From Octopus sinensis (Eukaryota): a stretch of DNA of 64,000 bases. The position numbers were made by a program, and so were the translations under genes. The stretch is taken from positions 43,338,001 to 43,402,000 of the forward strand of contig NC_043001.1 of NCBI RefSeq assembly GCF_006345805.1. The letters run 5' to 3'. Of this stretch, positions 2,954 to 35,915 are shown piece by piece; the stretch's first letter is position 1, and every line of letters starts with the position of its first letter. The notes below the pieces were generated by a model that saw only the letters and a list, made by a program, of their open reading frames with translations, did not search any database and was not told where the DNA came from.

Positions 2954-4197
2954 ATACTAAAAAAAATTCGAAAAGGCGGGAAAAATGAAAATGTTACAGA
3001 AGACGAGGAAGACACAAATATATTAAAAATTCGAGTTTCTCTCTTCTTTTGCAAAATCACTATTTCCTAGAAATCGAAAGGTTTGGGTGAAGTTGATAAT
3101 TGACGGAGGTAAAGGACATGACCACGCCCCATTTCTTTTTTTTTTTACTACAGAAACCCACTTTTTCGACTGCGGAGATTCCGAATCTGCAAAAAGAAAA
3201 ATCGGCATTTCAAAGGGATTGTGGTACATGTACTTCACCTCCGCCTTGGTAATTTTCGTCGCTATTGTATAAGATTACCTATACACATTTTTCATAACTC
3301 TTTTCATACAACTCTGTACATACATATTTGGTCAACATCGACGAGAACATTTAATAAATGTTACTATTCACTCATCACTTCGCTTGTATCTTTCTGAGTA
3401 TGTGTATGTATGTATTGTGTTAAAATATTATTAGTATGGCTATTTGTACAAACTTGACTTATGTGAGGAGGGGAAAGGGTTTAAAAATTTAAAAGAATTT
3501 TTTTTTTCCATAATCGTATGAATTCCCGTATGTAGAACACAAATTCACAAAAATTTCTGAACTTTCCAAAAAAATAAAGTTATGAAGGGGAATACGGGGT
3601 GCATTAAACCAGAATTAAACCGCTAATTGGAGCACTTAAAAAGACTAATGTCCGATGTTTAAAATAAAATTTCGCATGCTTTTACGTATCCATACTGATT
3701 TTCGCGTATCCACAAAGAAATTGGACACTGAATTTTCCATTTTGAAAATTTTTCATTTCAGACGGTATATTCAGGGATACTCCAAAATTCATCAAGAAAA
3801 TTTGATGAAAATGATTTGGCCTATTGTTTACGGATCGAATACAATACTCTAAAAAATGTTTAACCTAAGCTGAAATTAAAAACACTCGTACATACATTTT
3901 CTATAAAACCCTAAAATTGTAAAATGTCTCATATAAAAAATGACTGTATCAATTGCAGTGTCATTAATCAAATCTTGAAATGTCTGAGTTGACGTTGACG
4001 AAAAAGTAAGGCTATTGTGACCTTGTGTAATGCTGATAGTGATATCTTCTTTCTTAACACCGGTCCTGTTGTCAAATTTCTTCTCTGAAATAGTGAGGGC
4101 AGTGAGAAATAATGCTGAGTTTGGTATCTATCTTGTTCAAAGATAGCAATTCCTAAAATAAGTTTATATACAATCGAAGACATTTGTTATCGGCCAA

Positions 4198-4320
4198 CAC
4201 GTGCGTACGATGACCTACCGCATGCTTTTCCGACCAGTTTGTCACCTGATTGCCGCCAGAAACGTAACTAGGGCTTGTTTTGCGATTCGTCCTTCCCCCA
4301 CTTTTTATCTCACACACGTG
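4198..4320. promoter_or_regulatory. Two canonical E-boxes (CACGTG at 4198-4203 and 4315-4320) at the MTHFD start
   Basis: Motifs seen directly in a CpG-richer first-exon region. Function not demonstrated. Confidence 0.35.
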
Positions 4321-4433
4321 TCTCCTGCCTCTTGTTCTAGACCGATAACAGTAACAAGACTTAATTCGAATTATTCTGCAGAACGTCACCAAACTACCAT
4401 GGCAACTTTACTGAGCGGTAAAGAGGTTTCAGC
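4210..4433 (+). CDS. MTHFD1: MTHFD exon 1 (upstream ATG 4210; core ATG 4399 in ACCATGG context)
   Basis: Open frame from 4210 through [12 protein letters not shown], followed by donor GTAAGT at 4434. Confidence 0.85.
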
Positions 4434-7400: not shown

Positions 7401-10400
7401 AAAATATACTGACTGCAATATATAATTAATGATAAAATGCAATAATAATGCATTAAATTTTCCAATTTTAAAGAAGCTAATTTTAAAATATTCAGATCAG
7501 TTTTGAAGACTTCTGTGAAAGATCTAGTGGCATTAAATCTGTTTATAAGAACAAGATGTTAATAAATTTCAGATTTAGATTTTTGATTTAACCCATATTC
7601 TTTTGATATAGTGTTTTTTTGCAGTTTAATTTTTTAGTGTGTTTAATGTAATTTTTCATATTACATTTGTTAAAATTATATATTCAAACAAAACAATACT
7701 TTAACCTTGAAAAGGATATGGTCATTTATCCATTTAGCATTTGTATTACTCTGTCAAATGTAGTATTGAGATTTCAATGATGTGGTTGTTTAGGGGTTTT
7801 TTTTTTCTTTTTTTTTTTTGTCTAGAAATACCTAGTCGGGTAGTCTTGGGATGGTGGATATGGCCAGTTTAACCCTTTGACGTTCAGATAATACTGTGAA
7901 ATTTAATATTTATTTATTCACATTGTTTTGAATTAATTGTGCATTATCTTGTAGCTTTGAAATTTTGATGATGTAATTATTTTCAGAATGACATTGTAGG
8001 GTAAGTGTGAGAGGCCATATATTAACAATTTAAACATAGTACAGGTAGAATATATGGGCCAGATAATGTCAGTTTAAATGCTAATAGGTTAAGTTGCTTA
8101 GTCTTTTATGTTTAACTTTGTATTTTAGATTTTTTGAACTTGTAAACAGATGCTCCAAAAAGCCTCATTTTTTAAAATTTTGTGTTTTGTTTTATGCTTA
8201 ATTGCTTATAGTTAAATAAATAATATTTAAAAATTACAACATTAGAGCTTGGTTAACCCTTTCGTTACCAACCTGGCTGAAACCGGCTCTGGCTCTGTTG
8301 TACAAATGTCTTGTTTTCATAAGGTTTGAATTAAAATCTTCCACCAAACGTTAGTCACAATTTATGTTCCTAACACTAGCTGAATGATAACTAAGTTATT
8401 TTACTACATTCTTTGTTATATTTAAAGTAATTGAAAGAAACACTGAGCATCTCAAAATAAATACAGTAATGAAAGGGTTAAGGTGTTAAAAAGTAGCCTG
8501 ACGACCCACATTGTCCATGTATGTTATACATAATTAGTCAATTCACAAATCAAGGGGTTAGAGGAGTGATAACATAAATTGAAGAGTTGAAATTTTGCGT
8601 ACTGACACCACAAACTTGCATACATTTTGATATTAACTATTACTAATTTCTTGCTTGCTTTCTCTCAAATCTGATGTCTATACAAGTATAAGAAAAAATT
8701 ATTTACACATATAATAGCCAAATCACCTCACAATTATGCATATAATAACCAAATTACCGAGCAATCACACAACCTGATGACTTGGTAGGAAAAAGAGAAC
8801 AAACAGAATTCTAAATATAGAGACAAATTGGTCGAGGCTGACTTAAACAGCTTTTTTTTTTTTTTTTTTGTACATAGATTTCTTGAAGTTTCACCGTGTA
8901 GATGAAACTGTATGCTATTTAAGTGTCTTTGATTTGTTTTGTTAATGTCTTTTTAGGGAGATCCGCAATAAATTGAAAGAAGATATTGAAAACTTCCAAG
9001 ACAAATATCCCAAATTTTTACCTTGCTTAGTTATAGTCCAGGTGAGAATTATTTCTTGAAATTAATGTCTAATCATAATAAAAGCTGGGTTAGTTAGATA
9101 TAGTATTGCAATTAATATTCTATGTTAGATAACAATTAATCTTTGAGCTCAAGCACCTTAGAGATAATCACAGATGTTATGAATACTGCTTGAGATATTC
9201 AAATAATGACATACATACCATTGGCAATGGTTAAGGGAACTTTTAACTTTTCTCTTGTGAGATGGTTCAAGCCATCAATGTGAGCCATAAATGATAACTA
9301 GACATGAACTAGGGATCACTTCAACTGACTGCACTCTCTTTCTATAAAGAGTGAATCTCAGGTATATCAAACTCAGTGTTTTTTCTTCTATAGTTGTATA
9401 TAATTTACTATTTTTGTTACCATCACTTACTATATGCTTATAAAGAATTACTTTAATCTTGGCATATATTGATGAAATACAAAGTAGCTGCCTTATCTTT
9501 AACGTTTCCTAATGACACAATCTTTTTTTCTTTTGCGATGCTTCATCAGAAGAGGAGGGCTAGGATTAGTACCCATGACTTTCTGAAGATCTCTTCGGTA
9601 TGTGGGATTGATGCAGTTGATGCCCATTCTGGATATCTGCAAGGAGCAGGGTACTGAAACTCTGGTTCAAATGCAACTAAATGAACTTCACTAAAGACAC
9701 CCGAGGATATTGTTTTAAACTAAATTGTATTGCATGTTAAGGATTAGGATTATCACTAACATTTTGAAACTGTCATTGGATAATAAACATGAGGGCAAAG
9801 TCTTTGTTTTTATGAGATTTCCAAGATGAAGATTTCATTTCAGAGAAACTAATATTGAAAATTAAAAAGTATTTAAAATTGCTTCATTTATAGAATACAA
9901 AATAAAGTAAAGAAAATATTTGTTTCCATGTATAAATAAATGGTTTAGTCAGGTGCAGAAGTTTATATAAATGTAACAGAAATAAGAGCAGTAAGCTTAA
10001 CTTGAAAGACAAGACAATCTCAACCACATGAATTAGACTTGTTACACTACTACTACTACTACTACCTGTCTGATACTAAATATCAGACAATTGGTGTTAG
10101 TAGTAGTAGCAGTGTATAGTCATAACAATTCTTTTATTAGGTTGGAGACCGTGAAGATTCTAATGTTTATATTAGAATGAAAGTAAAGAATTCAGCTGAC
10201 ATTGGGATGAAAGCAGAGCACATCAAATTACCAAAATCTTCAACTCAAGCTGATGTAAGTTAGATAACAGTACTTACTAATTCAGTTCTTTTATTGCCTT
10301 CTCTTGTTTAGTTATTCAACTGATTTTCATCATCATCATCATCATCATCATCATTGTTTATTGTTGCTTTTTGAATAACAATACTTCTTTCATCAAACTA

Positions 10401-13400
10401 ATAACCATGTTAAATAACACTGATCACCTGACTTTCAGATTGGGTCAAGTGATATAATAAACATAAGCATCACAGGAAGCCAGCAACACTACCATATGAA
10501 TATTGTGTCTTTTTTAAAATATGTTGTTTCAAAGCTTTCTATTCGATTGTGGAATATTCTTAAGCACTTATTTTTTACATGACGCCATTACTTAAAATCA
10601 TGTCTGCTAATAAGTTTTGGAATTAACAAATTTCATGCTGAGAAGTATTTTGCTTATAATCTTATATATGACAAATATTGATAAGGATTTAATTACTGGT
10701 GTGCAATAGACTTATAATTTATTGCTGCAATAAACATGTATCCTTGCTTACCAGGCTGCTTAGTATTGTATATGACCCAATTACACTGTTTGAACACACA
10801 GCCTGTGTGTGTAGTTTGTGTGGTTAATGGATAAGTTTATTGCAGTTGATGTTCAAGTGTTACTCATTAATGGTTAAAAGTTACAAAAGAGACAAGCACA
10901 CAATTCGACTATGAGAATTGTAAAGTGTGTACCTATCAGTTCATCATTATCATTTTCAACATCTATTTTTCTATGCTTGCATGAGTCAGACAAGAGTATG
11001 CTGAAGTGTGTTCTATGGTTGGATGCATTTCCTGATGCCAACCCTCAAGATATTTGCATTTACATTTATTTTATTTTTTTAGGTGTTGGCAACAGTTAAC
11101 AGACTCAATGAAGACCTTACTGTCCATGGTATTATTGTTCAGGTACTTTGACAGCATTCTGCCTTTCTTTTCACAATTGGTAATTCTATTCAGTTAATTG
11201 GTTGATAACCTATCGGGTGGGGGCTATCTACAGCTTTAGGGATTAATCGTGTGCACTAGGAAACAAAGTTTAAATATTAACCAAGCATAAATTGTTAAAA
11301 GTATCCATAGAGCCTGGGACTTTTACAGGAAAATAAAAGGGATCATGTGAAAGGCTTATTTTCTCTAAAATCCTTAGTGATACAAGTCCAATTAAAATGG
11401 CTTTGATAATCAAAACCTTGTCTAAGCAAGAGAATATTAAAATAAAGAAAATTGCAATGTACAACAAATTGCAGCAGTTTGCATTGTTGCCCTTTCTTTC
11501 ATTGTTTATATATAGGCAGCTTTACAGTAAAAAGGCCAATGAGTGAGTCTTCACCTAGTTGTTCAATTTGCTAGAAATAACAGCCTAATTACATTCTATC
11601 AGCATAAAAAATTAACATTGTATAATTTCATGGGTGTACTTACCTGGCGATTTGATGTGTGACTATGTGTTGAAATTAAATTACAATGTGGAAGACACAT
11701 CCTAGACAATCAAAAGCACACAAAGACTGTTAACTTCACTTAAATATTTATTTTTTGGTGTCCAAATTTTTGTCGCACCAAATGATAAATGCTTAAGTGT
11801 TGCTAACAGTCTTTGTGTTTTTGAGTGGCTGATATTTGTCTTCCACACTGACATTGTATAATGTCATCTTAGATTGGATGGTCATAATTGGGATACCTTC
11901 AGCCATAGATATGCTTGGTCACAGCCACGTGAGGCTAAGCAACAACTGTATAGTAAAGAGTAGCAACAGTAGAGACTGACCAAATACCAAAGAATAGAGG
12001 GAAGTCATGTCTACAGTTTTATTTCACTTCTTGGTAATAGTTAGCTTAGTATTACACAATCTTCATTTTCATTCACCTGAGTAGAAGATTGAAGTTTTTT
12101 TAACTAAGAAATCAGTATAAATACAGACGGTTTTATCTTTTTAATTATACACATTTTTTTAAAATGATGATTTTATTAACCCCATGATAACAGGGTTTTT
12201 TTTAATCAAGCAACTAGGTTGCATTGATGGTAGTCATCTCGGCTGAGATCAGCAATTAAGCACACGACAATGGTTCAGCGTATATTTACATCAGGGGCTT
12301 TAACCAGTTTACAGCAGTGATTCATTCATTTGCCTGCACGTGGCTACGGTAATTGCACCAATTCAGGTCAGCACTTAGTACGAGATAATGTTTAACATAT
12401 AGTTACATCAACCTCTTTAGTGCAAATATTGTTTATTTACCTAAACTATATCGCTGTGCAGGATACTCATGCAGTATTATCCCTGAATCAGATCGCTCAG
12501 CAGCACAAGTCGGATCAACTTCATGTATTTACAATCACGTGAATTCAAAAATTGACTTTAGTGTGGTAGAGTTCAAAACAGGATACTGCACATAGTGGCA
12601 TATCACATTGTGAACAAATAGTATTTAGTTTCCTTATGTTTCCCTTTTGCTTTACATACTGTGCATCTCATTGGAGCATTTGTCTTCATGGCGGTGGGGG
12701 AAAATGTCCAACATGGGGATGTCCACATGTTCTGTACTTTGGAAGCTCTGATGCTTCTATCATTTCATAAAACAGTAGATTCCTGAATGTCAATTCATCC
12801 CGTTACACCACCAATTATCTGCCAAATCAAAGACACATTGTCAATTATACACAAGAAAATTTTTTTTGTACCATTTCACAAATTTTCTCACCAATTTGTG
12901 TGTTGTCGCCAGCTGATCTCAGCAATCAACCCTGCCCATCCCTTCATTGTATGAAACAACTACGCTTGGTTTCATTATAGCATTACCATCCTCATCTTGT
13001 TTCCTACTGTTCTTCATGCTTGCAGAATGTGTTGTGGATAACATGCAGACGTTTTTCTTGTCACGTCACGCTAGAGCAAGAATGCTACTATCAGTGCATA
13101 GGTACACTGTTTCCCCCTTTCAAAGTTTTATCAGGTGGCATGTTTTCCCTGTGTATCCTCACAGTCCCACAGGCATTAATCTTCCTCATCTGCAACTGCA
13201 GGAAGAGGTCTGGACTGGAAAACCAGCTGTTCATATAAATATTGTAGCCTTTGACAAACAAGCTTTCATTCAACTCTAATTGACACTAGAGTAGACACTG
13301 GAAGATCCAATCTGTCCTGATCAGTGTAGATTTTGTAATTCCACATATATCTACAGGCTTTGCTAGTTGACTGGCATACTTTATAAACCTTGACTCCAAA

Positions 13401-16400
13401 GCAAGTACATTTGGTCGGGTTGTATTGTTTGAATCAGAGCCTTCCCTTGAATTTCCACAAACTTTATCAATACAAATGTCCTGTGTGGGGACATACATCA
13501 TTCTGAAATTTTCAGCCACTTCATCAATGATAGGATGTATTTAGTGCAACCTATCATCCTGGTTCTTATCTGAGTTGAAATGTAGATTTCAAAAAGCGCC
13601 AAAAATTGATCATGTGCCATCATTTCTGGAAAGAAATGTGTTGGTGTGGCTGGATCCAGATTCCAATGACACTAAGGTCGGTTTATTCACGATGCACATC
13701 AGTATCAGCAGGGCAAGCAGAAATTTGATTTTGACCGTCTGGTTGGAAACCAATCACCACCATGCTGGGGATGGTTTTCAGCATACTCATTTTTGTTCGC
13801 TATATATTGGAACATTTCATTCATCAAAAACTCATGGAAGATTTGCAATGGTGAATTTCCATGTTCAAGGTTTGTCTTTATGTCAGGCGTACCAGTAAAC
13901 CCATACCATTGGACAAAATTGTCTCTTGCACGTCACATGATAGTCTGTTGTTTGGGGCCATTCACTACTGCACGCCTGTGCCTTTGATTCACTGGAATAT
14001 CACTATCACTATTGGAATCATCTGATTCTAAACTAGTAAGAATACTCACTATCTGAATCATTGTCTGAACTGGAAGAAACAACTGGTGAGGTGGTGAATT
14101 TTGGTATTGCCTGGTGCAACAACCGTAAATTTGACAAAACAGGATGTGACAATGAAGTGGTAGGACGTGATGAATGTAAATTCGACGAAACGGGATGCAA
14201 CAGCAAATTGACAGAGCCGGAGTGGCAGGACCAGCCTATCAGGTAGTAAATATTTACATGAAACATGTAATTGACCTATCAGTTGGCAGGTGGACCAGGC
14301 AGCATATAATTACATCAACCAAGCATGTACATTGCATGTGTAAATTTATGTCAACTATTTTAAAAGGATTAACTTGAATTTACATTCTGAAGATTCTCTG
14401 TTAAAAAAAGATTCAGGCATTTTGCTTTGTTTTTATTAACTATTTTTCTTTGTCTCTCATTCTCTCTCTAGCTACCAATGGAATCTGAACATGAAATTGA
14501 TTCTCATCTTGTCACCAATTCTATAATTCCCTCCAAAGATGTTGATGGGTAATACCAAAATATTTTTTATAGGAAACATTTCCTTTTGAAGCTTGCTTAA
14601 CTTGGAAGACAGATATATCTGTGTGTATGTGTATAGGTGTATTGTATATAAGTTTTCTTCCCAACTATAAATCCACTACTTGACACCTGGTAAATGCCTT
14701 CTTTAGCTCCTGGCCAACAAAAGCCTTGTAAGTGAATTGGGTAGACAGAAACTGGAAGAAGTCTGTTGTATTATATCTTTCATTATCATTTAATACCTAC
14801 CTTCCATGCTGGCATGGGTTGTTTGGTTTAACAATATCCAATAAACCAGAAGATTGCACAGAGCTCCAACATCTGCTTTGGTAGGGCTTCTACAGTTGGA
14901 TGCCCTTTCAAGCACCAACCACTTCACAAAGTGTACTGGAAGCTCTTTTCAAAAAGAGGAGTCTCTGCAACTAAGTAGTAAAAGAAGAGGTGGTTTTATG
15001 CCAGGTGTTGTGAAGCTAGAGTATGATAGAGGAACTCACATAAATGTTTTGGTGTAGGGGATATATAGGGTTATGTTGCATTATACAAGTGGTTGGGAAT
15101 AGCTGGAAAGAATCTGTCTGGCAACCGTGTCGGTGGCACGTAAAAGCACCATCCGTTCGCGTCCGTTGCCAGCCTCGGCTGGCCCCCGTGCCGGTGACAC
15201 GTAAAAGCACCGTCCGTTCGTGGCCGGTTGCCAGCTCTGTCTGGCCCCGTGTCGGTGGCACGTAAAAGCACCATCCGTTCGTGTCCGTTGCCAGCATCGC
15301 CTGGCCCTGTGCCGGTGACACGTAAAAGCACCATCCGTTCGTGGCCGTTCGCCAGCTCTGTCTGGCACCTGTGCAGGTGGCACATAAAAAACACCCACTA
15401 CACTCGCGGAGTGGTTGGCGTTAGGAAGGGCATCCAGCCGTAGAAACACTGCCAGATCTGACTGGGCCTGACGAAGCCTTCCAGCTTCACAGACCCCAGT
15501 TGACCCGTCCAACCCATGCTAGCATGGAAAGCGGACGCTAAACGATGATGATGATGATGAATATAAGGATGTTGGTAACAAGGAACAGATAAAGATGTAG
15601 AGGTTAATGTAGTGAGTGATATACAAGGGTGAAAGTGTAGTTAATAGGAAATATCTGGGGCTGGTTATGCGAAACTGGTGTAGGAGACAGCTGTGAACTC
15701 ACTTTATATGCCGGGTCTTCGCAGTCACAGCATATCTCCAGAGGTCTCGATCTTTTGTCATTGCCTCTGTGAGGCCCACGTTTGAAGGTCATGCTTCACC
15801 ACCTCATCCCATGTCTTCCTAGGTCTACCTCTACCCTGGATTCCTTCAACTGTTTGGGAGTGGCACTTCTTCACACAGCTCTCCTCATCTATCCATAGTA
15901 CATGGCCATACCAGTGCAAACGTCTCTCTTGCACACCACATCCAATAAGAAATGACTGACTTTTTTAGAGTCCATTTGGATCTGTATAAAAATAAACAGT
16001 TGCTGCTTGGTGTGATCTGCACATGCATGTATTTTCCACATACACTGTCATGCTATTAAACTGCTAGTCAGTTAACTAATAACCCATGTTATGTTTATTA
16101 AATAAAATTATGGTTATTATCTTGCTTGTATATATTTGTCTATTTAAACAGGTTATTGTTTGCTAACAAAACTTAATAGATCCATTGAAAATTGAATTTG
16201 TATTCTTTGTAGTTTGCATTCAGAAAATGCTGGAAAGTTAGCTGTTGGTGACCTCAGTCACTGTATTACTCCCTGTACTCCACGGGGATGTTTAGAATTA
16301 ATCAAAAAATCAGGTATAGTTTTACTTTTATTTTTTATCTACCATCATTATCATGAGGTGTTATCATCTCTAGAAGCTCATCTTTATTGTCATGGTATTA

Positions 16401-19400
16401 CGTAATTACCAAATTTTGCTAAACCTTTCACTCTACAACATTATATGTCCCAGATTCTTTTTCCAAACACAGATTTAAACTTTACATTTCCTGTTAACAC
16501 CATAGCAGTTACTTGTGACCTTTTAAAAATAGATTTAATTTCATTCTTTTTTTTTTTTTTTAACTAATCGTAAATACTTGTAGTTGTATAAAGTACATGT
16601 AGGTGTAATACACACTAGTGATTAATTATATTACAATATTTAGCTGGTGGTGGTGAGTTGTTGTATTCTTATATTTTAATATTTGGATTTTTTCTAAATT
16701 AGCTTTGTAATGTTGGAGGCTAATCTCTATAAATTAGTATAAATGATTCACTTTATTGATGCAAACATAGCACCTAGCTATTACACTGTATTTACCTAGC
16801 AACAGTTTGTTAGTGATAGTAAACTTGATTATATATAGTTGTATGGTAGAAGTTTGCTTCCCAACTACATGGTCTTGGGTTCAGTCCCACTGTGCGGTAG
16901 CTCAGGCAAGTGTCTTCTGCTACAGCCCTGAACTGACCAAAGCCTTGTGAGTGAATTTGGTTGACAGAAGCTCATCATGCGTGTATGTATTTGTGTGTGC
17001 ATAAGTTGGTATCTCCTTGTCTCCACATCAAATGGTTGTTGTAAATGAGTGTCACTGTCATACAAGTGCTGTCCTTCATTTCCAGTCTTCCATGGAAGCA
17101 TGTCTGGTCATGGGGAATATTACCTTACTTGGCAATAAGAAAATCTGCCTCAAAAACTTCTGTCTGATACATACAAGCATTGGAAAAGTGGGTGGTGGTA
17201 GCATAACTTGATGCCTTATTGATATGCCATTTGGCCTTACATGATTCAAGAGAAAAAACATGAGTATAGTTTTCCTGTTACCTTTTCCATACCTCTAAGA
17301 AAGAGCTGAGCTTATCACTACAATTTAACAAAGCATTACTCAGTTATTAGGCTTTTATTTGATAACTGGGTTGTTTTTGGTAGGAGTATAATGCAATACT
17401 GGAAACAACAATAAATGATGACCTTGTTAGTTACCCAAGGTTCAATACAAGACACCTCTAAGTATTGCAGTGAAGTTAGATCCAGAACCATATGATTTGG
17501 AAGAAAACTTAACCACGCAGCTATGTCTGAATTCATGCATCACCCATATTCCTATTAAGTTGTCATCTCCTTTATCATTTAAAAGGTAAAGTTTATTTGA
17601 TAAATATTATTTAACCTTTTTGATACCTACCTGTCTGAGACTGCTCCTGGTTCTTTAATACAAACTTCCATTTCTAATAAATATTAGATATTTGTTAAAT
17701 CAAGTCTTAATAAATTTTCCTGAATTGAATCTATTCCACTAGGGGTGCCAGTTAGTGGTAAAACTGCTGTTGTGCTAGGTCGAAGCAAAATAGTCGGTGC
17801 TCCCATGTCCAATTTGTTATTATGGAACCATGCTACTGTCACAGTTTGTCACTCAAAGACTGTTGATCTGCCAGCTGTGGTAAGTTTGACAATATTTTTA
17901 CATATCTTTGTGTTACATATGTAATTCTTATTGGATGTTTTACTTGGCATTTCTCATTACTTGTGTGGGTTGGGTTAACCTTACGATGCATAGATCAAGA
18001 TATTTGCAATGATAATCTACTTATGACATTGTGGTAGGTGGGGACAATTTGTTCTTCAGCTGACGAATTGCTGTCCAGCTGACGAATTGCAGAAACCTTA
18101 TATTTTGTCCTCTGAATACAGTTGATTTCAATGGAAGGAAAGAATAATGGTATTAGAACTTGTAATTTAAACAAGTGAAACTGAATACTTTACTTTCTCT
18201 GTCAACTCACTCCTCAGTAGAATCTTGATTAATTCATAAGATTTTTATCTTCTGTATCACTCTGCAGTTTAGCATTACGTTTTGCAATTATCTAAAGTTG
18301 CATATTTTGTATTATTGCATTTTGGTTCAGATATTTATAATAAATAAATAAGTGTGCTTATTTATTTATGATGAACTAATTATTAAGGAATACTTTTACT
18401 TCCAAGTTTAGTGAGCCTAAAAGTATTCTATATGGAAAATGAGCCATTTTTACATTGCTGCTACCTTTGAGAAAATTAAGAGAGGCTATATGTAGTCAAA
18501 TATTCTTCAAATCACATCTTTCTGTCTTACAGAAATAAAAGACATTGGAGAATGTAGTTTCAGATACATTCTTTAAAAAAAAAAAAAAAAAGACATGGTC
18601 GTAGAGCTGATTTAGATTTAAACAACAACTATTGTTATTGATAAGAAATGTTTGCATGAATTACTAGATTAAATATCTCTATGTTGAAAACTTCTTTGAA
18701 ACACGCTACTACATTGCTGTCACAAATTAATGATGTTACTTATTATTTACTTGATTTTGTACTGGTTGCAATGTTGCTGATAAAATATTCTTTTTTTCAC
18801 ATGTCTGCAATTAATATTTTTTTTACAATTTTAAATTGTGTACCAACTCTGATTTTAAAATATTCTTCTGTTTATGTAAAAAAAAATTGGTCTGATTTTT
18901 TTTTCATTGGAAACAAAAGTAGACATCATCTCTAAAAGTTTTTACTATTACACATACCACAAGTTAGCATAGTTTTAAAAAAATATGATGCATTTATGAG
19001 CAATGTGTAAATAATTGTAGCTATAAACAAATGTCTAAACTTTTAATCACATTTGCACTAATGGGCTGGATATTAGAAAAAGATGTATTAGTAAACTGTC
19101 ACTGGGTTCTTAAATCTATGTATCCTTTGGTACATTTGCTTCATATGCTTTGCTCAGCTGTACGTGCGACATTTGTCAGTGTCTTCCTTTTATTATTGAA
19201 AACTTTTTAAGCTTCAGTTTAAGAAATTAATTTAAGTGTTCTTTTTCTGTTTTCAGGCTATTATCTTTTCATTGCAACATATGTCTAGATGATGGAAGTT
19301 TATCAATGTTAAATTATTTTACTGTATTTAATTTACAGACTTGTAATGTAAATTAAGAAATAAGCTTGTTTTGTCACCATCTTGTAGTTTTTTCTCTTCA

Positions 19401-20524
19401 CTTAAACTGCTATTTACTTTTGGAAAAGATTTGAATAGATGTAACACTACCTATCTTTCCCTTTTCTAAAGCCATAAACAGACACCTAATTATGCATTTG
19501 ACAAATGATTGATTAATTGTAAACATTACCTTTAAAGAGAAGAGTAGATATTCATTTGCTAATTAAACTAAAAATATTGTACAGGTGAGAACAGCTGACA
19601 TACTTGTGGTTGCTATAGGAAGACCAGAATTTGTCAAGTCAGATTGGATTAAGCCTGGTGCAGTTGTTGTTGATTGTGGAATTAATTCTATCCCAGGTTA
19701 GTGAAATACCTTCATATTTACTTCAGCTGGGGCATTTGTATAACACTTGTGTATATATACGTTTTAAGGAGACAGTTGCAATGTCACATGTTGATGCAAA
19801 ATCAAGTTTTATTTTCTACACTACCCTCTCTTTTCAACTTCACCCCTGTCTCTTGAAAATGCAAGTAGTCATGTTGCTTCTCTACAGCAAGGAATTTGTT
19901 CTGCTCTACCCCTTTTCCTCACATTTTATTCCTCTCTACTTTTTATAAGGTTGCTCTTTTCTAGATTCAGGGTTCATAGTCTTGCGAGCTGCATGATGGC
20001 CAAACTAGTGATGTTCGTATAGAAAATTTTCCAGCACATACTGTAAAATGATTGGAATTGAGAACATACACCTTCATACATGCCAAATAGACACTGGAGC
20101 ACTGATGTTGGTTTGTCAGAATTACCATTTTATTAGTTCAGCATAAGTCAGCATGAAAAAGACGTGTAAAGGGGTGATTTTTATATTGGCATATTTTGAA
20201 GTTTAGTGTTTGACAAGATAGTTAAAGAAACTGTTAATGGATATTTTCTAAGAGAAAAGTTGATGAGGCTTCAGTGTCATGTAATTATACAATGCGGTAA
20301 ATAACTATATAGATCAAATTGTCTGTATGTTTTCTTGTTTTACAGATGAGACAAAGAAAAGTGGAAAGAGACTTGTTGGTGATGTTGATTTTTGTGGAGC
20401 TAAAGAAGTTGCCTCTTGGATTACGCCAGTTCCGGGGGGTGTTGGTCCCATGACTGTGGCTATGCTGCTTCAGAACACTGTAGAAAGTGCCAAGAAGTTT
20501 GCGCCCAAGCAGTTTGAAAGTTGA
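4210..20524 (+). CDS. MTHFD1: MTHFD1-type NADP-dependent methylene-THF dehydrogenase/cyclohydrolase, D/C domain only (299 aa from ATG 4399; 362 aa from ATG 4210)
   Basis: Hand-spliced exons with GT-AG ends: 4399(4210)-4433, 8957-9041, 10141-10254, 11083-11142, 14472-14548, 16213-16313, 17743-17879, 19585-19696, 20346-20524. Total 900 nt, in frame. Motifs: [14 protein letters not shown] (YxxxK), [57 protein letters not shown]. Stop TGA at 20522-20524. Confidence 0.93.
4970..5760. repeat. Foldback-like copy of the ATCCGATTCTG repeat family in MTHFD intron 1
   Basis: GTTTTTGGTTATGGAGGATCCGATTCTGAAAA (~5103-5135) is inverted as TTTCAGAATCGGATCCTCCATAACCAAAAAC (~5718-5748). TACGTAGAAAAATACGAAG is also inverted. 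Confidence 0.6.
6886..7400 (-). mobile_element. CR1/L2-like LINE 3' remnant plus the abundant 'TTAGGAAGGGCATCCA...AACCCATGCTAG' tail repeat
   Basis: Tail motif 6886-7030 recurs at ~14810, 15410, 21200, 23420, 24860, 53810 and 58020. ORF 6999-7343 resembles a decayed LINE C-terminus. Confidence 0.5.
7869..8092. mobile_element. TTAA-flanked piggyBac-type MITE, family B
   Basis: TTAA|CCCTTTG...ATGCTAATAGG|TTAA. Partial relatives at ~23130-23225, 53950-54067, 54140-54350 and 54400-54500. Confidence 0.6.
8253..8481. mobile_element. TTAA-flanked piggyBac-type MITE, family A
   Basis: TTAA|CCCTTTCGTTAC...GTAATGAAAGGG|TTAA. Near-identical copies at 51517 and 52186. Confidence 0.85.
8957..9041 (+). 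CDS. MTHFD1: MTHFD exon 2
   Basis: ttttag|G GAG ATC CGC ... GTC CAG|gtgaga; [28 protein letters not shown]. Confidence 0.92.
10141..10254 (+). CDS. MTHFD1: MTHFD exon 3
   Basis: [38 protein letters not shown]|gtaagt. Confidence 0.93.
11083..11142 (+). CDS. MTHFD1: MTHFD exon 4
   Basis: [20 protein letters not shown]|gtactt. Confidence 0.92.
12176..14372 (-). mobile_element. Decayed piggyBac (PGBD4-like) transposon in MTHFD intron 4
   Basis: Frameshifted minus-strand transposase: D-E-S-like region followed by KFKGRLRFKQY/RARFG (~13480-13390), [16 protein letters not shown] (ORF 13091-13273), and C-terminal Cys-rich domain [10 protein letters not shown]...[20 protein letters not shown] (~12680-12550). 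TTAA at both ends, but the TIRs are poorly matched. Confidence 0.8.
14472..14548 (+). CDS. MTHFD1: MTHFD exon 5
   Basis: [26 protein letters not shown]|gtaata. Confidence 0.92.
15126..15560 (+). repeat. SINE/LINE-tail element with five ~61-bp tandem units and a (GAT)n tail
   Basis: CACGTAAAAGCACC recurs at 15137, 15198, 15259, 15319 and (degenerate) 15381, followed by the TTAGGAAGGGCATCCAG tail and GATGATGATGATGA. Confidence 0.85.
15700..15945 (-). mobile_element. RTE-clade LINE ORF2 C-terminal fragment
   Basis: Minus strand reads [11 protein letters not shown]...[17 protein letters not shown] (RTE-type WxGHV / GRPxxTW). Confidence 0.75.
16213..16313 (+). CDS. MTHFD1: MTHFD exon 6
   Basis: [33 protein letters not shown]|gtatag. 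Confidence 0.92.
16840..17200 (+). mobile_element. Diverged tRNA-derived SINE
   Basis: GGGTTCAGTCCCACTG...GGCAAGTGTCTTCT...CCAAAGCCTTGTGAGTGAATTTGG, as in 2584-2953. Confidence 0.7.
17743..17879 (+). CDS. MTHFD1: MTHFD exon 7
   Basis: [46 protein letters not shown]|gtaagt. Confidence 0.94.
19585..19696 (+). CDS. MTHFD1: MTHFD exon 8
   Basis: [37 protein letters not shown]|gttagt. Confidence 0.94.
20346..20524 (+). CDS. MTHFD1: MTHFD terminal exon 9
   Basis: [59 protein letters not shown]. Confidence 0.92.
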
Positions 20525-20607: not shown

Positions 20608-20613
20608 AATAAA
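20608..20613 (+). terminator. Polyadenylation signal candidate for the MTHFD gene
   Basis: AATAAA 84 nt after the stop codon, followed by U/GU-rich sequence. Confidence 0.55.
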
Positions 20614-24133: not shown

Positions 24134-24207
24134 TTATGCTACATCTTCCTTAGTGGCTCTGGTGTAGATGATCTGTGAATGGTGTTTGGATACCAGCTTG
24201 ATGTCAC
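24134..24207 (-). CDS. RPS25: RPS25 exon 4 (terminal)
   Basis: ttttag|GT GAC ATC AAG CTG GTA TCC ... GCA TAA. Confidence 0.93.
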
Positions 24208-27200
24208 CTAAAATTTTTTAAAAAAATAACAGTAAAGATATCTACAACAAAAGATAAAATTATGAAGATGCAAAATAATAGAAAACAAATTTATATATTT
24301 ACAGGCAGCATGTTCAAGCATACTATATTTACTTGTGTATATAATATGCAGACCCACGTGTGAGCAACAAAATATCAGAAAAGTATCTCGTGTATAAAAT
24401 GCACAGACTTCTCTAGTATATATGGAAACAAGTTATAATTGCTGTATAAAATACACCAAATAAATGCACACATCCTCCATAAAAATCTTTGACCGTTACC
24501 AATTAAACATTTCTTCTCTCCCACATCCTAGTCTCCGTCATTTCCAGACCATCTTATGTTGCCTTGAATATACATACCTATCATAGAGTATTGAATGTTC
24601 ATACCAGCATCCCAATCACACATCGCTCTTATTTATGCCTCATTCAAAGAGACTAGCGAGCAAGCAATCAAGCAGAGACAGGGCTCTGAGAACCCCCTAG
24701 TCATATTGAAAACAGTTATTTCTCTAGCACTAGTGTCCCCTCCCCCACCAAAAAACCACACACTCTACACTTTAAAAAAACGTGAAGATTGTAAAGCCTA
24801 ACTGAGGATGCTAAAGCTCTAATGCTGGCATGATCAAAATCCCCAGTACACTGGAAAGCCATTGCTATTAGGAAGGGCATCCAGTTGTAGAAACCAAACA
24901 AGATGAGATCCTCTTCTAGGTGAAAACAGGATGCTTTAAATACAGACTATCTGTCCAATCCATGCTAGAGTAGAAAGCAGATGAAAAGGAATATATGTAC
25001 AACTACACCATATAGAGTGGCATTAAAAATACAAAATCTCTCAAATCACAACCCTTTTCTATGCAACCAATGCATGAAAATTACTCAACACAAAACTTGA
25101 GAGTGTGACCTGTATCACTCACCTAGCTGAATATAAAAGAAAAGATCTTAAACCAAGTTAACCAACTATCAAACCACCTGTACACATTTCATGATTTAAA
25201 AGCGACAAATTTTGAACTGAACAGAATTTGATACTCCAGAACAGCATTAATTAGTCATTCTTTATATGAGCATTATCTTCTTATAATTATATAAACTAAA
25301 ACACTTTTGAGAAACAAGAATTTGCACACATACTACCATACAATAAATATCTAGCTAAGATACAGGCTATTTCTCTTAACTATCTTCACCATCCCTACCC
25401 TTCACAAAACACTAACTCTTTATGACATTGACTAATAAATGCTTACTTAACATGAACTTCAACTTTAAACTCACCAGTTTAGGAAGTTCTGCAAAAATAA
25501 GATATTGCTCACTTGGATTAACACACAAAGTAATTTTATATGAAAAAAAATAAAAGTTATTAGAATTTTCAAATGTATTTTCAAGCAAAACAAAATATAA
25601 CTGTCTAGAAAAAAAATAAAGAACAAGGCTTATGGACCAAAAATAATAAGCCTGGTTATCTGTTCAGAACTTCTTAGAGGATAAGAACATCATAATTAAC
25701 TTCAGGAGTCAGAACTTTATCATCTCTACAGAGAACCCAAATCAACTATTGAACAAAACATGCAAACTGAAGAATAACAAGATGCAGAATATAAAAATAT
25801 TGTTAAAATAAATGCTAGAAAGTATTTTGTAGAATATATTTTAATTTGTTTGGTTTGGAGAAAGGTACCTGTGGCCTTTTGCACACATTGAGACTAGTGA
25901 AATAAATGTAGCTAATTTTCCTAACGATCACCCACCAACATACATGCAGCTAAAATAAAAAAGTACACCAGATCAGGCTCATATTAAAACAACCTATACA
26001 TTTTCAATTACTTATAAACTTCAACTAAAACATTAATACTATGCCAAAAAAGAAGCTAATATTTTACACCCAGACCCAGACCAACAGATACCACTCATAT
26101 TAGACTAGCTTAAAAGCCTGTGGCCCCAAACTAAAGAGAGCAATAATAATAAAGCATTTATTGGTACCCTATCAAAATGGTATTACTTTAAATTCAGAAA
26201 AAATGAAAAACTTGTAAGTTCAAAAATTTTGGGAGTTCTTTTAAAATTCAACTGTTAGCATATAAATTCTCATCTAGACCTGATCACAATGCTAGATGTT
26301 CAAGAACCAAATGAAGGGCAAATTTTCTATCTCAGGATCATCCTGATTCCAAAGACATATATGTCTATGTAGAGCAAATATAGACTGAGATACAGGCTAT
26401 TGAGTAATGCAGTCACTTAACACTGGCGCTTCTGAATTAAGTAATCCATGCCATAAAAAAAACTTGCAAATGAAATTTCATAAAATATAGGATTTAGAGG
26501 AAACAGTGTCCATGTCCGAAGAAATTTTGTAAAAATAACCATTTCATTATTACTCAGATGTTTAAAATAAAAAGCTATTATGTAAAATAATAGAAAAGTT
26601 TTAATTGAAAATGGACAGTTTAGTATCAAAAGGAATGTTTTACTTTCCAGATAAAAAATAAAGAATTGCTATTCATTAAAAGAGCTAAGCTGGTTTAGTA
26701 ACATTTACTAGCAAACCAATATTGTCTTGACCTTATCTTTTTTTAAAATTAGTTTGATTTTAGATACTTCATGTTGAACTTAAAACACCACTTCATTTTC
26801 ACATGTTAGTGCAAGATATTTTACGAGTAGAGACCGACAGCCATCAGGGATGCTTGGTTCCACAACAGAACTGATATTCATAACCATGAACTTTTGATCT
26901 ATCAAAAATCAGTTTACAAAAACTCACAATTTAATTAGACATCATGAATTGTATTTCAAAAAGTGATGTAACTTTTCAATGTTGTAAAACAAAGAATTGT
27001 CAAGACAAAACTTGGTGCCTCACCTAGTTATTTCCTCTTTAATTTTTATTTTCTTCTTTAATTACCAGATACTGAAAGATCACCTTTTATGCTTAATGAC
27101 ATGCTATATACATACATATATTATATGCATGCAAATTTAACTGAATGTTTATATATGTTGACCGTTGCTTTGAGCCTCTGAGAGCTAAGAATATAACTTC

Positions 27201-30200
27201 CTTCCTTGGTAACAAGAATAGCAACTGGTTGCAAAATCCCACCTCATATACACCCCCCTCCTCCAAACCATAGAAAAAGGGTACTACTTAAGAAGAGTGG
27301 TCCGGGTGTGTGTACTCGCACATCCGCGCTAGCTAGTCGATCCTTTGTGTTTTTGTGCTTTATTTACTGTTTTTAAAAAATTATGTTGTGTTTTATTTAT
27401 TTTGCTAGGTAGTTGTTGTAGGATCGACTAGTCACGGATACCCGCACCGGGACCACTCTTCTTTAGTACCAGAAAAAGTTACACAAGCATAAGACTCAGC
27501 TACAAGCCACATGCAGTTTGAAAGGTATTAATATAAATGTCAGTTCTCTCCCCACAAATTTCGTTGCAATTGTAATCTATGCAGATTGAAAGAAAAAAAC
27601 TTGGATCTTGTGAATTTTCCAAAGTCCTCACCCCACCCACTCCACTGCTTTATGTGCATTTTTGTTTTCATACTGCACTATTTCTTTTTATTTCATTTCC
27701 AGGCAATATTGTAAGCATTAACTATATATTTCAGTCTCAATCTGATATTTTATGCTTACGTCGAATCTACTGCACGTCAGTTCTCGCCCAAACATGAGCA
27801 AAAATCATTCAATTGATCGATCCCTCCAATCTATATTAGTAGTGCTTTTCAAACTCCAACCACCAGCAATTGAGCTTAACTTGCCTTCATGCATTCAACA
27901 AAGTTCTTTCAGAAGTGAAATAGCACATTGCTCTCTGGTCTCTCACAAAGAGGATTACTTGACAGTAGCCTTGTACCAAGTTGAAATTTCAAACAAAATC
28001 ATTTCTTTCATTTATACAATTGCTAAATTTGAAAACTCTGATCATTCCAATCCGGAAGTCCAATGTTTGTTATAGTGTTTATTCAATACACACAGCTAGC
28101 TATTTAATGTAACCTATTCAGTATACAAATATAATTTTTAAATTACAAACCTGTTAAATTCTCATTTTAATATTGACAGTTATAAAGAAAATATTTTCTA
28201 GATACCATATAAACTCAACTCTAAAATAAAAAAAAAATTTAATGAATTGCTACAAAACAAAAAAAATTCCTACCTAGTCTTTCCAATTCACGGAGGGCAA
28301 GTTTTGCCAGAGAACCACGAATCTTCAATCTTTCACTAACCACTGAAGGTGTGACCAGTTTATAGCTTGGGACTTCTTTTAACAACTTATCATAAGTAGC
28401 ATTGTCAAAAAATACTAAATTATTTAACTTGTCCCTGACTTTTCCTTTTGACCACTTCTGCAATGGAAAAAAAAAAACAGCAGTTAGTAAAATACTTTGA
28501 TCAGTTAAGTAAAAGTTTTTCATGAGATATGTATAAAATGAGTGATAAAGTTCAGAACATACACATAGTGCACCTGTCTTGACGGACTTAATTGTATTTG
28601 TTTCTTTTCTAATCAGAAGTGCTTTTGACCAACAAGTATGAAGTATTTGGCAGGGAAATTTTGCTTGCTCATCATTAATAAACTTTCTTACTTGTGGGAG
28701 CTTATGAATAGTTTATGTAGTACTGAACTTAAGTTTTAAATATTTTCCCAAGTAATTAATATATTTTTCTAACACTACTGTATTCATTCACAAAATGTGT
28801 TATATTTCACATCAGTCATCATTAAGCTATTCTTTTCTGATGAGGTCTAATAAGACCAGAACATATCTAGGAGTTACCATACTTCTTGAGATCAAAGTCA
28901 ATTCCCATCGGACTCCATGTTTTAATATTTTTCATCTCCCCATTATACTTCACTTTTTAAAAACCAAAATTAAAAGGATTACATTAATCACAAAGAATGT
29001 AATTTGAACTGTTTTATGACTGTCACTGCTTTAATGCAAAAATTGGTAGCCAGCCAATTCATGATAATTTCATTTAACACTTCAATATCAGACTGGAATT
29101 GATTTGCTAATAAAAACAAAATCCATAGCCTTCAGTGTTATTTATACACAATATGTATGGTATTTTGAGTTACTCAACAGTTACATTAAATGATCCATAA
29201 ATTTATTATGTTCCATTATATAAATGCAAGATTGTTCCTGGACTCAGTGTTCCAGTCTTGGTCATCAAGTTTATCTTAAAAACACATCAATGCTTTTATA
29301 ATATTAAAAAAAAAAATTTTGGAGCTTTTCCCTCATAACTTTCAGGAAATGGATATATATTGGATTTTTTTTTTATGGATTCCCACGTTTTCAGCTATGG
29401 AGAATCCGATTCTGAAAAAAAAATTGTAAAATTTCAATCTGTCAAAAGAAATTTTTTAAATTGCATGCAACCCCCCCCCCACGCCCAATTCTACGGCCTT
29501 GGCCTTCAAGCTGGCTATCCACATGCTAGAAATATGCAATCAATCTACTCATCTCAAGTGAAATTAAAGTGTTCATTCTTTTGCTTTGAAAGTTATAGCA
29601 AAGAAATACTGTGACAAAGTGAACTTAAAGAGAATCATTTGACCAGCACAAGACATTTGCGAAACAGAAATTGGTCTTGCCCATTTGAGATTTGGCTGCT
29701 ATTTCTAGCATGTGGATAACCTGCTTGAAGGCAAAAAGCCGTAGAATTGGGAGAGGAGGTTGTTGGGGGTTTTTTCCAATATATATCCATTTTCCTGAAT
29801 AATATGAGGGAAAAATCGGATCTTTTGAATTTTCCGGAAGTCCCCTCCTCCCACCCATATTCGTTTTTTACAATTAACACTCAGCAGGCTGTTCTTTTGT
29901 TTACGTTAACGCGTGAGGATCTTAGAAATATTTTTCAGAATCGTAATCTTCGCATTTTTCTACGTATTTGGGGGGGGGGGTAGAAGGGTTGAATATATTA
30001 TATTGATAATGCGATTTTTGAAATTTTTTTTTTTTTCAGAATCGGATCCTCCATAGCCAAAAACGTGGGATTCCGTAAAAAAAGAAATCAATATATATAC
30101 ATATCCATTTTCCCAAAAGTTATAACGGGAAAATCGGATGTGGATTTTCCGAAAGTCCCTTCCCCCAACCCGCCAGGGTCATCAGCGTGCATTTTTTTCT

Positions 30201-33306: not shown

Positions 33307-35915
33307 TTAAAATGATCCTGCACAATGGCAGTTAAATCGATTGCAGCAGGAGATGAAAGAGAACATACGGCAACGAGAGAGTGCGTCAGCAGGTACGTTC
33401 TCTGTTTCAGGTATATGCCGAATGTCACTCATGAACTGGGAAATGTAGTCCAGGTGACAAAAAGCACGAGGTGGGTGTCTGTCCAATTTAGATGACAGAG
33501 CAAATGTAAGCGGTTTGCGATCAGTATAAATCACAAAATCTCGGCCATCAAGTTGATATTGAGAATGACGAACCGACAGGTAGATCGCTAAGAGTTCACA
33601 ATCAAATATACTGTAATGATGTTCAGCTGGCTTTAATTGACGAGAAAAAAATGCCAAAGGTCAAGTTTGATTATCGATGGTATGTTGTAAAACGGCCCCG
33701 ACCGCAGAATCCAATGCATCAACTGTTAAAGAGAGACAAGCATCAGGAACTGGATGTGCAAGCAAAGGAAAAGAAGCTATTTCCTTCTTGATTTACACAA
33801 AAGAAGATAGTGCCTCAGCAGATAAAGTGATAGGAGAATTTTTTTGTTTTATTTGCTTTCAATAGTTGAATCAAAGGATGTAACATGTTTGCACATTTAG
33901 GTATGAATCCCCTGTAGAAGTTGACGTTTCCCAAGAAATGACACAGATGGCATAAAGAAGTGGAAAGTGAGATGCATTGATTTGTATCGACTTTGGAGGA
34001 GAGAGGTCAGATACCATTAGAGTCGATATAATGACCTAGGAATTTCAGAGAGGTTTATCCGAAAACACATTTAGCAGGGTTGATTCGCACATTGTCGGGG
34101 CAAAGATGCTGGAAAAGTTGAGATTAGTGATGGAGGTGATTTTCATGTGAGTCACTAGCTATGAGCAAATCATCCATGTAAGCAAGCGCACAGTCAAGTC
34201 CACAGACAACTTCATCAATAAACCTCTGGAATGTACTCATTGCATTCTGCAAACTGAAGCTCATAAACAGGAACTCAAAACTTCCAAAAGGAGTGGTAAT
34301 GGCAGTTTTTGTGTATATTGTCAGGGTTCATCGGAATTGGATGATAAGCCCAGATGAGGTCAACCTTGGAAAAAACAGTACAACCATGCAAGTGTGAAGC
34401 AAAATCCTGGAGATTCCTTAATGGATAGTGATCTGGAACAGTGACCGCATTTAAACATGTATAATCACTCACTGGATGAAAATCTGAATCCCCTTTCCAA
34501 GCCAAATGAAGAGGAGATGCTCAAGAGCTGGTGGAGGGGCGAATAAGGCTGAGTTGAAGCATATACTCAAACTCAGATCAAGCCTTTTTGAGCCAATCAG
34601 GGGCGAGTCACTGTGGACATGAAAAAACGGGTGGTCCAGAAGTAGTGATATAATGGTGAATCGAGTGCGTAATTTTGTCTGATTTGAAAGTCGGATCTAC
34701 CAGCTCTGGGAAAGAAGCCAAAAGAGAGTGGAATTGATCTCCAGCAGTGGCGACAAAAAATGACTGGCTGAAAACAGCATTAGTAGTAACCCGAGCAGGG
34801 GTAAGCAAAGATGTAGAATCGTCCATGAGTCTGTCGCCTGACATCTTACTAATAAGTGAAAGTGGCTTTAGAAGTCTGCACCCAGAATAGAGTGTGGTAG
34901 ATCTGCTATAATGAAACCCACCTAAAATCCCTTCAAAGGTTGAGATCTAGGTTTAATGAGACCTGACTGTAAGTTTTTATTGGGGATAGATTCACCGTAT
35001 GCAGGTTAATGACAGATTGCTTTGCTTGTCTGAAGTAACATGCAAAGGCCAACTCTAACAGCTGGATCCAGTGTCAACCATGAATGATTCGTTAGACTCA
35101 TGATCCTTAACAAAGAATGCATGATGAGATGAAAAAATGGCGGGAAGAAACTGACATGCCCAAATCTTCTGCAACTAGTTTTCCGACAGCTTGAATGAAC
35201 AGGGTTGGATGCATCAATGGGCTTTGTCCTTAAATCTAGCATGGTACCAGCAGAGATTGGAAACCATTGAAACAGAACTAGATGACTGTGACTAAGAGCT
35301 GGTGTGTTCTTGCCACAGTGTGTCCATGCAACATGTTAATGCATCGACTCTCTCCAAAATGTTGTCATATGATGAGGCAGGAGACTTTGTAGTAGTAGGT
35401 GAAGCTACTAAAGGGTCTGAACAGGTATGGTGAAGTGCAGGCTGTACAGTAAGCTCTATGATCTTGTCCACCATGGTGGCTATCTGATTGAGCAAATTGG
35501 AGTCGACTGTTGTGGCCAGTATTGATTGGACATTCAGCGGTAGACAAGAGGAAAACAATTTCCTTAGCAGAAGATTGTCCTCAAGTGGAATATTGCTGAG
35601 TTCTCGCAACCAATGAAGAAACTCAGATGGTGTCCTATCTCTCAGATGTTCATCTTGCATCAGTGTCTGGAATTTACTCTCTGCGGATTGTGTGTTCCAA
35701 CGGAGAACCTCAGATTTCATGGACACGTAAGTTGCATCTGGATGTGGGTCAGTGATGAGATCTTTCACTGAGCGTGCGAGAGGTGAAGGCATTCCACAGT
35801 ACAAAAGGTTCAGTTGCTGTTGGTGAGGTACAGCATGGGCGGAAAAATATGCATCCAATTGAGCAAACCAAAGTGTGACATCACCAGAGTATGGAGGCAA
35901 GTTGGGAAGACTCAT
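33307..35915 (-). mobile_element. Decayed Gypsy/Ty3 LTR retrotransposon gag-pol, truncated after RNase H
   Basis: gag from ATG 35915 (LPPYSGDVTLWFAQLDAYF...DRTPSEFL), ILGADF protease tail (~34890), RT (YPLRNLQDF...FSKVDLIWAYHPIP; AYMDDLLIAS ~34180), RNase H (FFSRQLKPAEHHYSIFDCELLAIY...YTDRKPL...ADALSR). No integrase seen. Confidence 0.9.

Follow-up and report, generated by a model that had tools for sequence, protein, structure and literature searches.

A folate gene of Octopus sinensis has a reading frame that continues upstream of the start codon of its enzyme core to two further ATGs. The question raised by this locus is what the 63 additional codons encode, whether they direct the enzyme to mitochondria, and whether the same gene also serves the cytosol. 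A first-pass annotation of the 64-kb stretch of DNA that was analysed here (the window) had read the extension as resembling a mitochondrial presequence, had suggested that one gene may supply both compartments, and had combined this with a missing synthetase into an unusual arrangement of one-carbon metabolism. Here, we considered the gene model, the type of enzyme, the extension in this and other cephalopods, and the paralogous gene that carries the synthetase.

The exons were located with tblastn probes, followed by manual reading of the splice sites. The gene comprises nine GT-AG exons (Table 1), and the spliced product is either 362 aa (the long form) or 299 aa (the core). The 362-aa product is an exact match to XP_029636440.1, listed as “C-1-tetrahydrofolate synthase, cytoplasmic isoform X1” of Octopus sinensis, so that the long form is already the reference model. 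The second RefSeq isoform, X2, found in O. sinensis and O. bimaculoides (P0122, P0124), is 247 aa long and starts with MKVKNS at Met116 (≈10177–10179). It is devoid of the leader, of the first 52 residues of the core and of the catalytic Y52, and its transcript would accordingly begin with a different 5′ exon. The exact 299-aa core protein had no match in a collection of 15 billion proteins, and the RefSeq products are the 362-aa and 247-aa forms only. The window is ≈99% identical to the corresponding locus in O. vulgaris, and the products from the two species differ in a single amino acid, Tyr55 in O. sinensis and Ser55 in O. vulgaris (codon 55, window 4372–4374). This site belongs to the second half of the leader, which evolves fast.

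Table 1. Positions of the exons and associated features of the folate gene in the window.
Feature	Positions	Strand	Remarks
In-frame stop TAA closing the frame 5′ of the first ATG	4159–4161	+	
63-codon N-terminal extension, putative mitochondrial presequence, ending AERHQTT	4210–4398	+	ATG1 at 4210, ATG2 at 4222
Remainder of exon 1: ATG 4399 (ACCATGG), 35 nt, GTAAGT donor	4399–4433	+	Met64 of the long form
Exon 2	8957–9041	+	
Exon 3: YxxxK catalytic motif, Met116 (start of RefSeq isoform X2)	10141–10254	+	
Exon 4	11083–11142	+	
Exon 5	14472–14548	+	
Exon 6: PCTPRGC motif	16213–16313	+	
Exon 7: GRSKIVG and CHSKT NADP-site motifs	17743–17879	+	
Exon 8	19585–19696	+	
Exon 9: coding end, stop TGA 20522–20524, no synthetase after it	20346–20524	+	Argonauta ends likewise
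AATAAA, likely polyadenylation signal, 84 nt past the stop	20608–20613	+	Read by eye

Residues 68–354 of the long form matched the Pfam families PF00763 (117 bits; cut-off 32.8) and PF02882 (230 bits; cut-off 27), and no other domain was detected. The protein scored 405 bits against the D/C domain of human MTHFD1 (PDB 1A4I and 1DIA), compared to 208 bits against MTHFD2 (5TC4), and the residues Y52, K56, Q100, D125, R173 and S197 were all identical in the alignment to the human MTHFD1 D/C domain. Given this affinity to MTHFD1 and the intact catalytic and NADP-binding residues, the product should be an active, NADP-type, MTHFD1-derived methylene-THF dehydrogenase/methenyl-THF cyclohydrolase (D/C). 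Orthology to MTHFD2 was rejected, since the bit score was about half of that for MTHFD1 and the alignment required an 8-residue gap at the MTHFD2-specific loop. Nor is the gene that of a trifunctional C-1-tetrahydrofolate synthase: the stop codon comes directly after the D/C domain, followed by the AATAAA, and no match to the synthetase domain FTHFS (PF01268) was found anywhere within the 64-kb window. The database name “C-1-tetrahydrofolate synthase, cytoplasmic” is probably inaccurate in both of its parts. The D/C domain is 72% identical to that of the trifunctional oyster protein, and 57–61% identical to the fish proteins described below. The PDB alignment begins at residue 65 of the query, which corresponds to residue 4 of human MTHFD1, and by this correspondence Met64, encoded by ATG 4399, is the ancestral MTHFD1 start codon.

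MTHFD1-like proteins consisting of the D/C domain only are widespread (e.g., P0039, P0043, P0044, P0047, P0070 and P0114). Some of these have basic N-terminal leaders (in teleosts, one spider and tardigrades), and others are leaderless (in other spiders and in many unnamed transcripts). Loss of the synthetase from copies of MTHFD1 seems to have occurred repeatedly.

The three ATGs of exon 1 (4210–4212, 4222–4224 and 4399–4401) are in the same reading frame on the + strand, and this frame is without stops from the TAA at 4159–4161 to the GTAAGT donor after 4433. Both the frame and the peptide were as the first-pass annotation had given them: the extension is exactly 63 aa long, with eight Arg, one Glu, no Asp and 14 Ser and Thr residues. 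It is also devoid of Lys, and the Glu, at position 58, is the first acidic residue. The GC content of the extension is 46%, compared to 30–33% in the flanks. Within the window, only 2.3% of ATGs were preceded, at a distance of 50 codons or more and without an intervening stop, by another ATG in the same frame, and 1.5% of stop-free 63-codon stretches had eight or more Arg and no more than one acidic residue (D + E). A long open frame together with an Arg-rich, acid-poor composition is therefore jointly unlikely to have arisen by chance, even in one genome. The first ATG has A at both the −3 and +4 positions, and is followed 12 nt downstream by the second. A TATATA sequence is found at 4165–4170, 40–45 nt 5′ of ATG 4210. 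It is shared by the three Octopus species (O. sinensis, O. vulgaris and O. bimaculoides), and Argonauta does not have it. If this were a genuine TATA box, the 5′ leader would be ≈10 nt long, possibly favouring bypass of the first AUG; in an AT-rich genome, this is pure speculation.

We then compared the extension with those of other cephalopods. In O. bimaculoides, the 63-codon frame is kept, with seven of the 63 residues changed, all of them past residue 34; the first 100 nt differ from O. sinensis by one change, which is synonymous. O. vulgaris also has an open, basic extension. In Argonauta hians, the frame is 61 codons long; its alignment with the Octopus extension has 66 columns, of which 28 are identical, among them the motifs AARNV and IRPxPxFYLxHVSP. 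Among the decapodiforms, Sepia-type transcripts from four samples have a 63-codon extension, and a second decapodiform, represented by one transcript, has 53 codons. The decapodiform extensions could not be aligned with those of the octopods, yet they have the same make-up, with a net charge of +6 and one acidic residue; over the leaders of the other cephalopods, the net charge ranged from +6 to +8, with at most one acidic residue in each. All indels between the Octopus and Argonauta extensions, and between those of the decapodiform pair, are in frame. The assembled decapodiform transcripts (five samples) cover the upstream ATG, and have an in-frame stop 21–24 nt 5′ of it. The first-pass annotation had proposed to look for an open, Arg-rich extension in other cephalopods. 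Two further Octopus species (O. bimaculoides and O. vulgaris), Argonauta hians and two decapodiforms thus have one, and neither stops nor frameshifts, which would have spoken against it, were found in the cephalopods examined.

Substitution rates differed between the two groups. In the decapodiform pair, dN/dS was 0.29 for the extension (Fisher p = 0.001), compared to 0.06 for the core, and the extension is under purifying selection. Between Octopus and Argonauta, the extension had a dN/dS of 0.74, which is indistinguishable from 1, while that of the core was 0.05. The differences at codon positions 1, 2 and 3 of the octopod extension numbered 16, 16 and 21, respectively, i.e., there was no third-position bias. 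In the comparison of O. sinensis with O. bimaculoides, non-coding DNA upstream shows about the same conservation as the extension itself, and the two species are too closely related for coding constraint to be distinguished from conservation of non-coding DNA.

These octopod data are what might be expected if the extension were not translated at all. Translation would then start at ATG 4399, yielding a D/C enzyme of the cytosol only, and gene predictors, which choose the longest ORF, would have created the long form as an artefact. A cytosolic site would also fit the ancestral role of MTHFD1 and the need for D/C activity in the cytosol. However, an ATG with a purine at −3 followed by an open frame of 53–63 codons is present in four lineages whose sequences are largely unalignable, and the chance of this is only ≈2% per lineage. 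The in-frame indels, the low dN/dS in the decapodiforms and the basic, acid-poor make-up that is kept throughout also speak against an untranslated extension, and a scanning ribosome would reach the first ATG before any other. We therefore consider this explanation highly improbable. By the comparison between species, the leader shows the pattern of a sequence that is translated and evolving rapidly, in which the composition is conserved and the sequence is not. Presequences typically conserve composition instead of sequence.

The extension is N-terminal, carries a net positive charge, is nearly free of acidic residues and is rich in Arg, Ser and Thr, consistent with the composition of mitochondrial presequences. 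The presequence-like character that was first noted in O. sinensis extends, as an open, basic and acid-poor frame, across the cephalopods. Based on these comparisons, a mitochondrial presequence is the best reading of the extension, with a probability of roughly 0.65. The maximum hydrophobic moment was 0.73 (residues 4–14), a value that was reached by 10% of shuffled sequences and is not significant. In the AlphaFold2 model, residues 1–60 have a pLDDT below 50, with no helix or other secondary structure, and the fold starts at about residue 62. This disorder indicates that the extension is an appendage that lies outside the enzyme fold. An Arg is present five to seven residues before Met64 in Octopus, Argonauta and the Sepia-type transcripts, but not in P0004, and one 10-residue stretch near the junction matches an R-10-type processing-peptidase pattern; both of these were noted by eye, and the motifs are weak.

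The presequence would have arisen by recruitment of an upstream ATG in frame with the ancestral MTHFD1 start, now Met64. Most ribosomes would start at ATG 4210, producing a 362-aa precursor of a D/C-only enzyme. The leader would then direct import into mitochondria and be removed near the junction, the region in which three of the four lineages have an Arg. Translation from ATG 4210 in octopus, import, the site of cleavage and the activities of the enzyme are all inferred; for the use of ATG 4210 in O. sinensis, the evidence consists of the annotation and the comparison with other species. A solely mitochondrial enzyme would leave the cytosol without a D/C activity of the MTHFD1 type, which would be odd for an animal and counts against this reading.

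The other part of the arrangement was found elsewhere in the genome. A bivalve FTHFS query retrieved 929-aa proteins from O. vulgaris and Argonauta and a 957-aa product of a decapodiform-looking transcript (P0283, P0280 and P0264). The 929-aa protein of O. vulgaris (locus L010) is encoded identically in O. sinensis, on a different chromosome from the window gene (L009, 4001–97958). The “missing synthetase” of the first-pass annotation is therefore not missing. An absence of the synthetase from cephalopods altogether, suggested by the lack of a trifunctional cephalopod protein among the first homologues listed, was likewise rejected: those homologues were no longer than 627 aa, the matches listed for a chimeric D/C+FTHFS query did not exceed ≈875 aa, and the FTHFS query alone brought up the 929-aa genes.

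The FTHFS domain of the paralogue is 78% identical to that of the pearl oyster, but its N-terminal D/C-like domain shares only 47% identity with the window protein. In the octopod paralogues, DSNVY is replaced by E-DCH, with loss of Y52, and PCTPRGC by SSTAAAI; GRSKIVGAP has become GHNKLTTTP, with loss of R173 and S174, and CHSKT has become CHPDM, with loss of S197. Among 120 FTHFS matches, all four D/C motifs were absent only in three proteins, all of them from cephalopods. The D/C activity of the paralogue was thus presumably lost. Upstream of its start, at the ancestral MASILSGK, the paralogue has no ATG in the same frame, and in this respect it serves as a control for the extension. Its first exon has the same design as that of the window gene (ATG, 35 nt, GTAAGT), and all eight intron positions in the D/C region are common to the two genes. 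These shared introns rule out that the window gene originated as a retrogene.

With one gene that is proficient in the synthetase, degenerate in D/C and leaderless, and another that encodes D/C only and has a leader, cephalopods appear to have split MTHFD1 in two. The window gene would be one half of this cephalopod-wide split, and the 929-aa paralogue the other; the latter has the appearance of a cytosolic equivalent of vertebrate MTHFD1L, with only the synthetase retained. The unusual compartmental arrangement that the first-pass annotation had anticipated thus stands, but for a different reason: it is not that the synthetase is absent, but that the long gene has lost its D/C motifs. MTHFD1 is usually described in animals as a single-copy, trifunctional cytosolic enzyme (PMC11064299), and we found no description in the searchable literature of its division between two genes in cephalopods. 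An entire animal class appears to have divided MTHFD1 in this way, and this natural experiment bears on the reason for the fusion of the three activities and on how one-carbon units cross between compartments. For the octopus, there are three options: the cytosol may do without a D/C enzyme of the MTHFD1 type, the short gene may be dual-targeted, or a different enzyme may take over.

The second of these options is made more attractive by the consideration that a mitochondrial-only short enzyme leaves the cytosol without MTHFD1-type D/C. The gene would then yield both a mitochondrial 362-aa precursor, from ATG 4210 or 4222, and a cytosolic 299-aa enzyme, from ATG 4399, either by leaky scanning or from a transcription start inside exon 1, and the cytosolic form would work beside the synthetase-only paralogue. 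Two in-frame AUGs bracket the presequence, and the downstream AUG is conserved in Octopus, Argonauta, the Sepia-type transcripts and P0004. In O. sinensis this downstream AUG has the strong context ACCATGG. All four cephalopod lineages have the corresponding Met64, even though the neighbouring residues diverge (xTM). In most of the teleost counterparts, however, this column is occupied by I, L or V, so that the conservation may be that of a hydrophobic residue and not of a start codon.

The spacer between the two starts contains no out-of-frame ATGs in Octopus, in the Sepia-type transcripts or in L007, but two in Argonauta. Pooled, these two compare to 6.4 expected (1.2–1.9 per lineage; Poisson p = 0.046), a marginal depletion (p = 0.08–0.16 for individual lineages) among lineages that are not independent. 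Other observations are less favourable to the use of both starts. The −3 position of the first ATG is A in all three Octopus species and a purine throughout the lineages examined, and the second in-frame ATG follows closely after it. The 299-aa product is absent from RefSeq, where X2 is instead a 247-aa truncation without Y52. The only other MTHFD1-type gene is leaderless and has lost Y52 and the PCTPxGC, GRSxxVG and CHSKT motifs, which favours a cytosolic role for the short gene, and the mechanism is known from Drosophila Nmdmc and Shmt and from TRNT1 and GARS1. On balance, we regard dual localisation, by either route, as possible but doubtful. Somewhat more tentative still is the full arrangement, in which the only intact cephalopod D/C enzyme of the MTHFD1 type would serve two compartments from one mRNA, its cytosolic form pairing with the 929-aa synthetase-only paralogue. 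If true, a fission of the trifunctional C1-THF synthase would be combined with dual targeting of one of the pieces. The dual targeting itself would be a new case of a known mechanism, not a new principle.

Several established systems resemble parts of this arrangement. TRNT1 and GARS1 are dual-localised by means of alternative start codons, with a weak context at the first start in the leaky-scanning TRNT1 (PMC12718117). In these genes, and in yeast CCA1, which uses alternative transcription starts, two in-frame AUGs bracket the presequence and the downstream AUG is conserved, as in the octopus gene; unlike in TRNT1, the context of the first octopus AUG is not weak. For both Nmdmc and Shmt of Drosophila, three isoforms are predicted, one of them mitochondrial and two cytosolic (bioRxiv 10.1101/2022.11.25.517956).

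MTHFD2 and MTHFD2L, to which Nmdmc belongs, resemble the octopus protein in being D/C-only enzymes with an N-terminal mitochondrial presequence (putative in the octopus). The octopus protein, in contrast, is without the 8-residue loop that is specific to MTHFD2, and keeps R173 and S197, the residues for the 2′-phosphate of NADP. MTHFD2 itself probably descends from a trifunctional ancestor whose synthetase was lost.

A further likeness is with fish. In zebrafish, the MTHFD1 paralogue Mthfd1a has a leader that is predicted to be mitochondrial (p = 0.97), and its synthetase is mutated (PMC3410756); percomorph fishes have 322-aa, D/C-only proteins with a 22-aa, Arg-rich leader. (One spider and two tardigrades have longer basic leaders.) Like the octopus protein, zebrafish Mthfd1a and the ≈322-aa teleost proteins, listed as “C-1-tetrahydrofolate synthase, cytoplasmic-like”, are MTHFD1 paralogues with an added leader and D/C motifs of the NADP type. 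The synthetase is either mutated, as in zebrafish, or gone, as in the percomorphs. The two groups differ in that the leader is ≈22 aa in fish and 53–63 aa in cephalopods, and that the Met64 column is Met in cephalopods and I, L or V in most fish. Furthermore, fish retain a fully trifunctional mthfd1b, whereas the long paralogue of cephalopods has lost its D/C motifs. The cephalopod and fish duplications were probably independent, as suggested by the greater identity of the octopus D/C domain to oyster than to fish. With precedents in MTHFD2 and zebrafish Mthfd1a, and with the 362-aa model already in RefSeq, the presequence itself is ordinary.

For the long paralogue, a parallel is MTHFD1L, which has been described as having a conserved FTHFS domain together with a degenerate D/C-like domain (PMC11064299). 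Both proteins have the full MTHFD1 architecture, with the degenerate domain at the N-terminus. MTHFD1L, however, has a mitochondrial leader, whereas the 929-aa cephalopod paralogue is leaderless; and, in a further difference from vertebrates, no intact trifunctional copy was seen beside the 929-aa paralogue in cephalopods. Since MTHFD1L is reported to be specific to vertebrates, the cephalopod case would be convergent.

The surroundings of the gene were also inspected. RPS25 follows as the adjacent gene on the downstream side, tail-to-tail with the folate gene and with exons at 24149–24208 and 28242–28460 on the − strand; the neighbour is the same in Argonauta (L001) and O. vulgaris (L002). 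On the upstream side, Argonauta has an MRP-L28 gene in head-to-head orientation (L001, 1–3982). Two of the introns contain repeats. Intron 5 has a tandem array of 61/122-bp units at 15113–15389, where the alignment with O. vulgaris breaks, and in intron 7 a unit of ≈135 bp (17975–18111) is single in O. sinensis but repeated in tandem about four or five times in O. vulgaris. Further downstream, an ORF at 48196–48912 on the + strand has a weak match to retrotransposon gag (PF03732; 23.6 bits, below the cut-off of 24.1), and an ORF at 35292–35915 on the − strand has a DUF7041 domain. These two ORFs are probably remnants of mobile elements.
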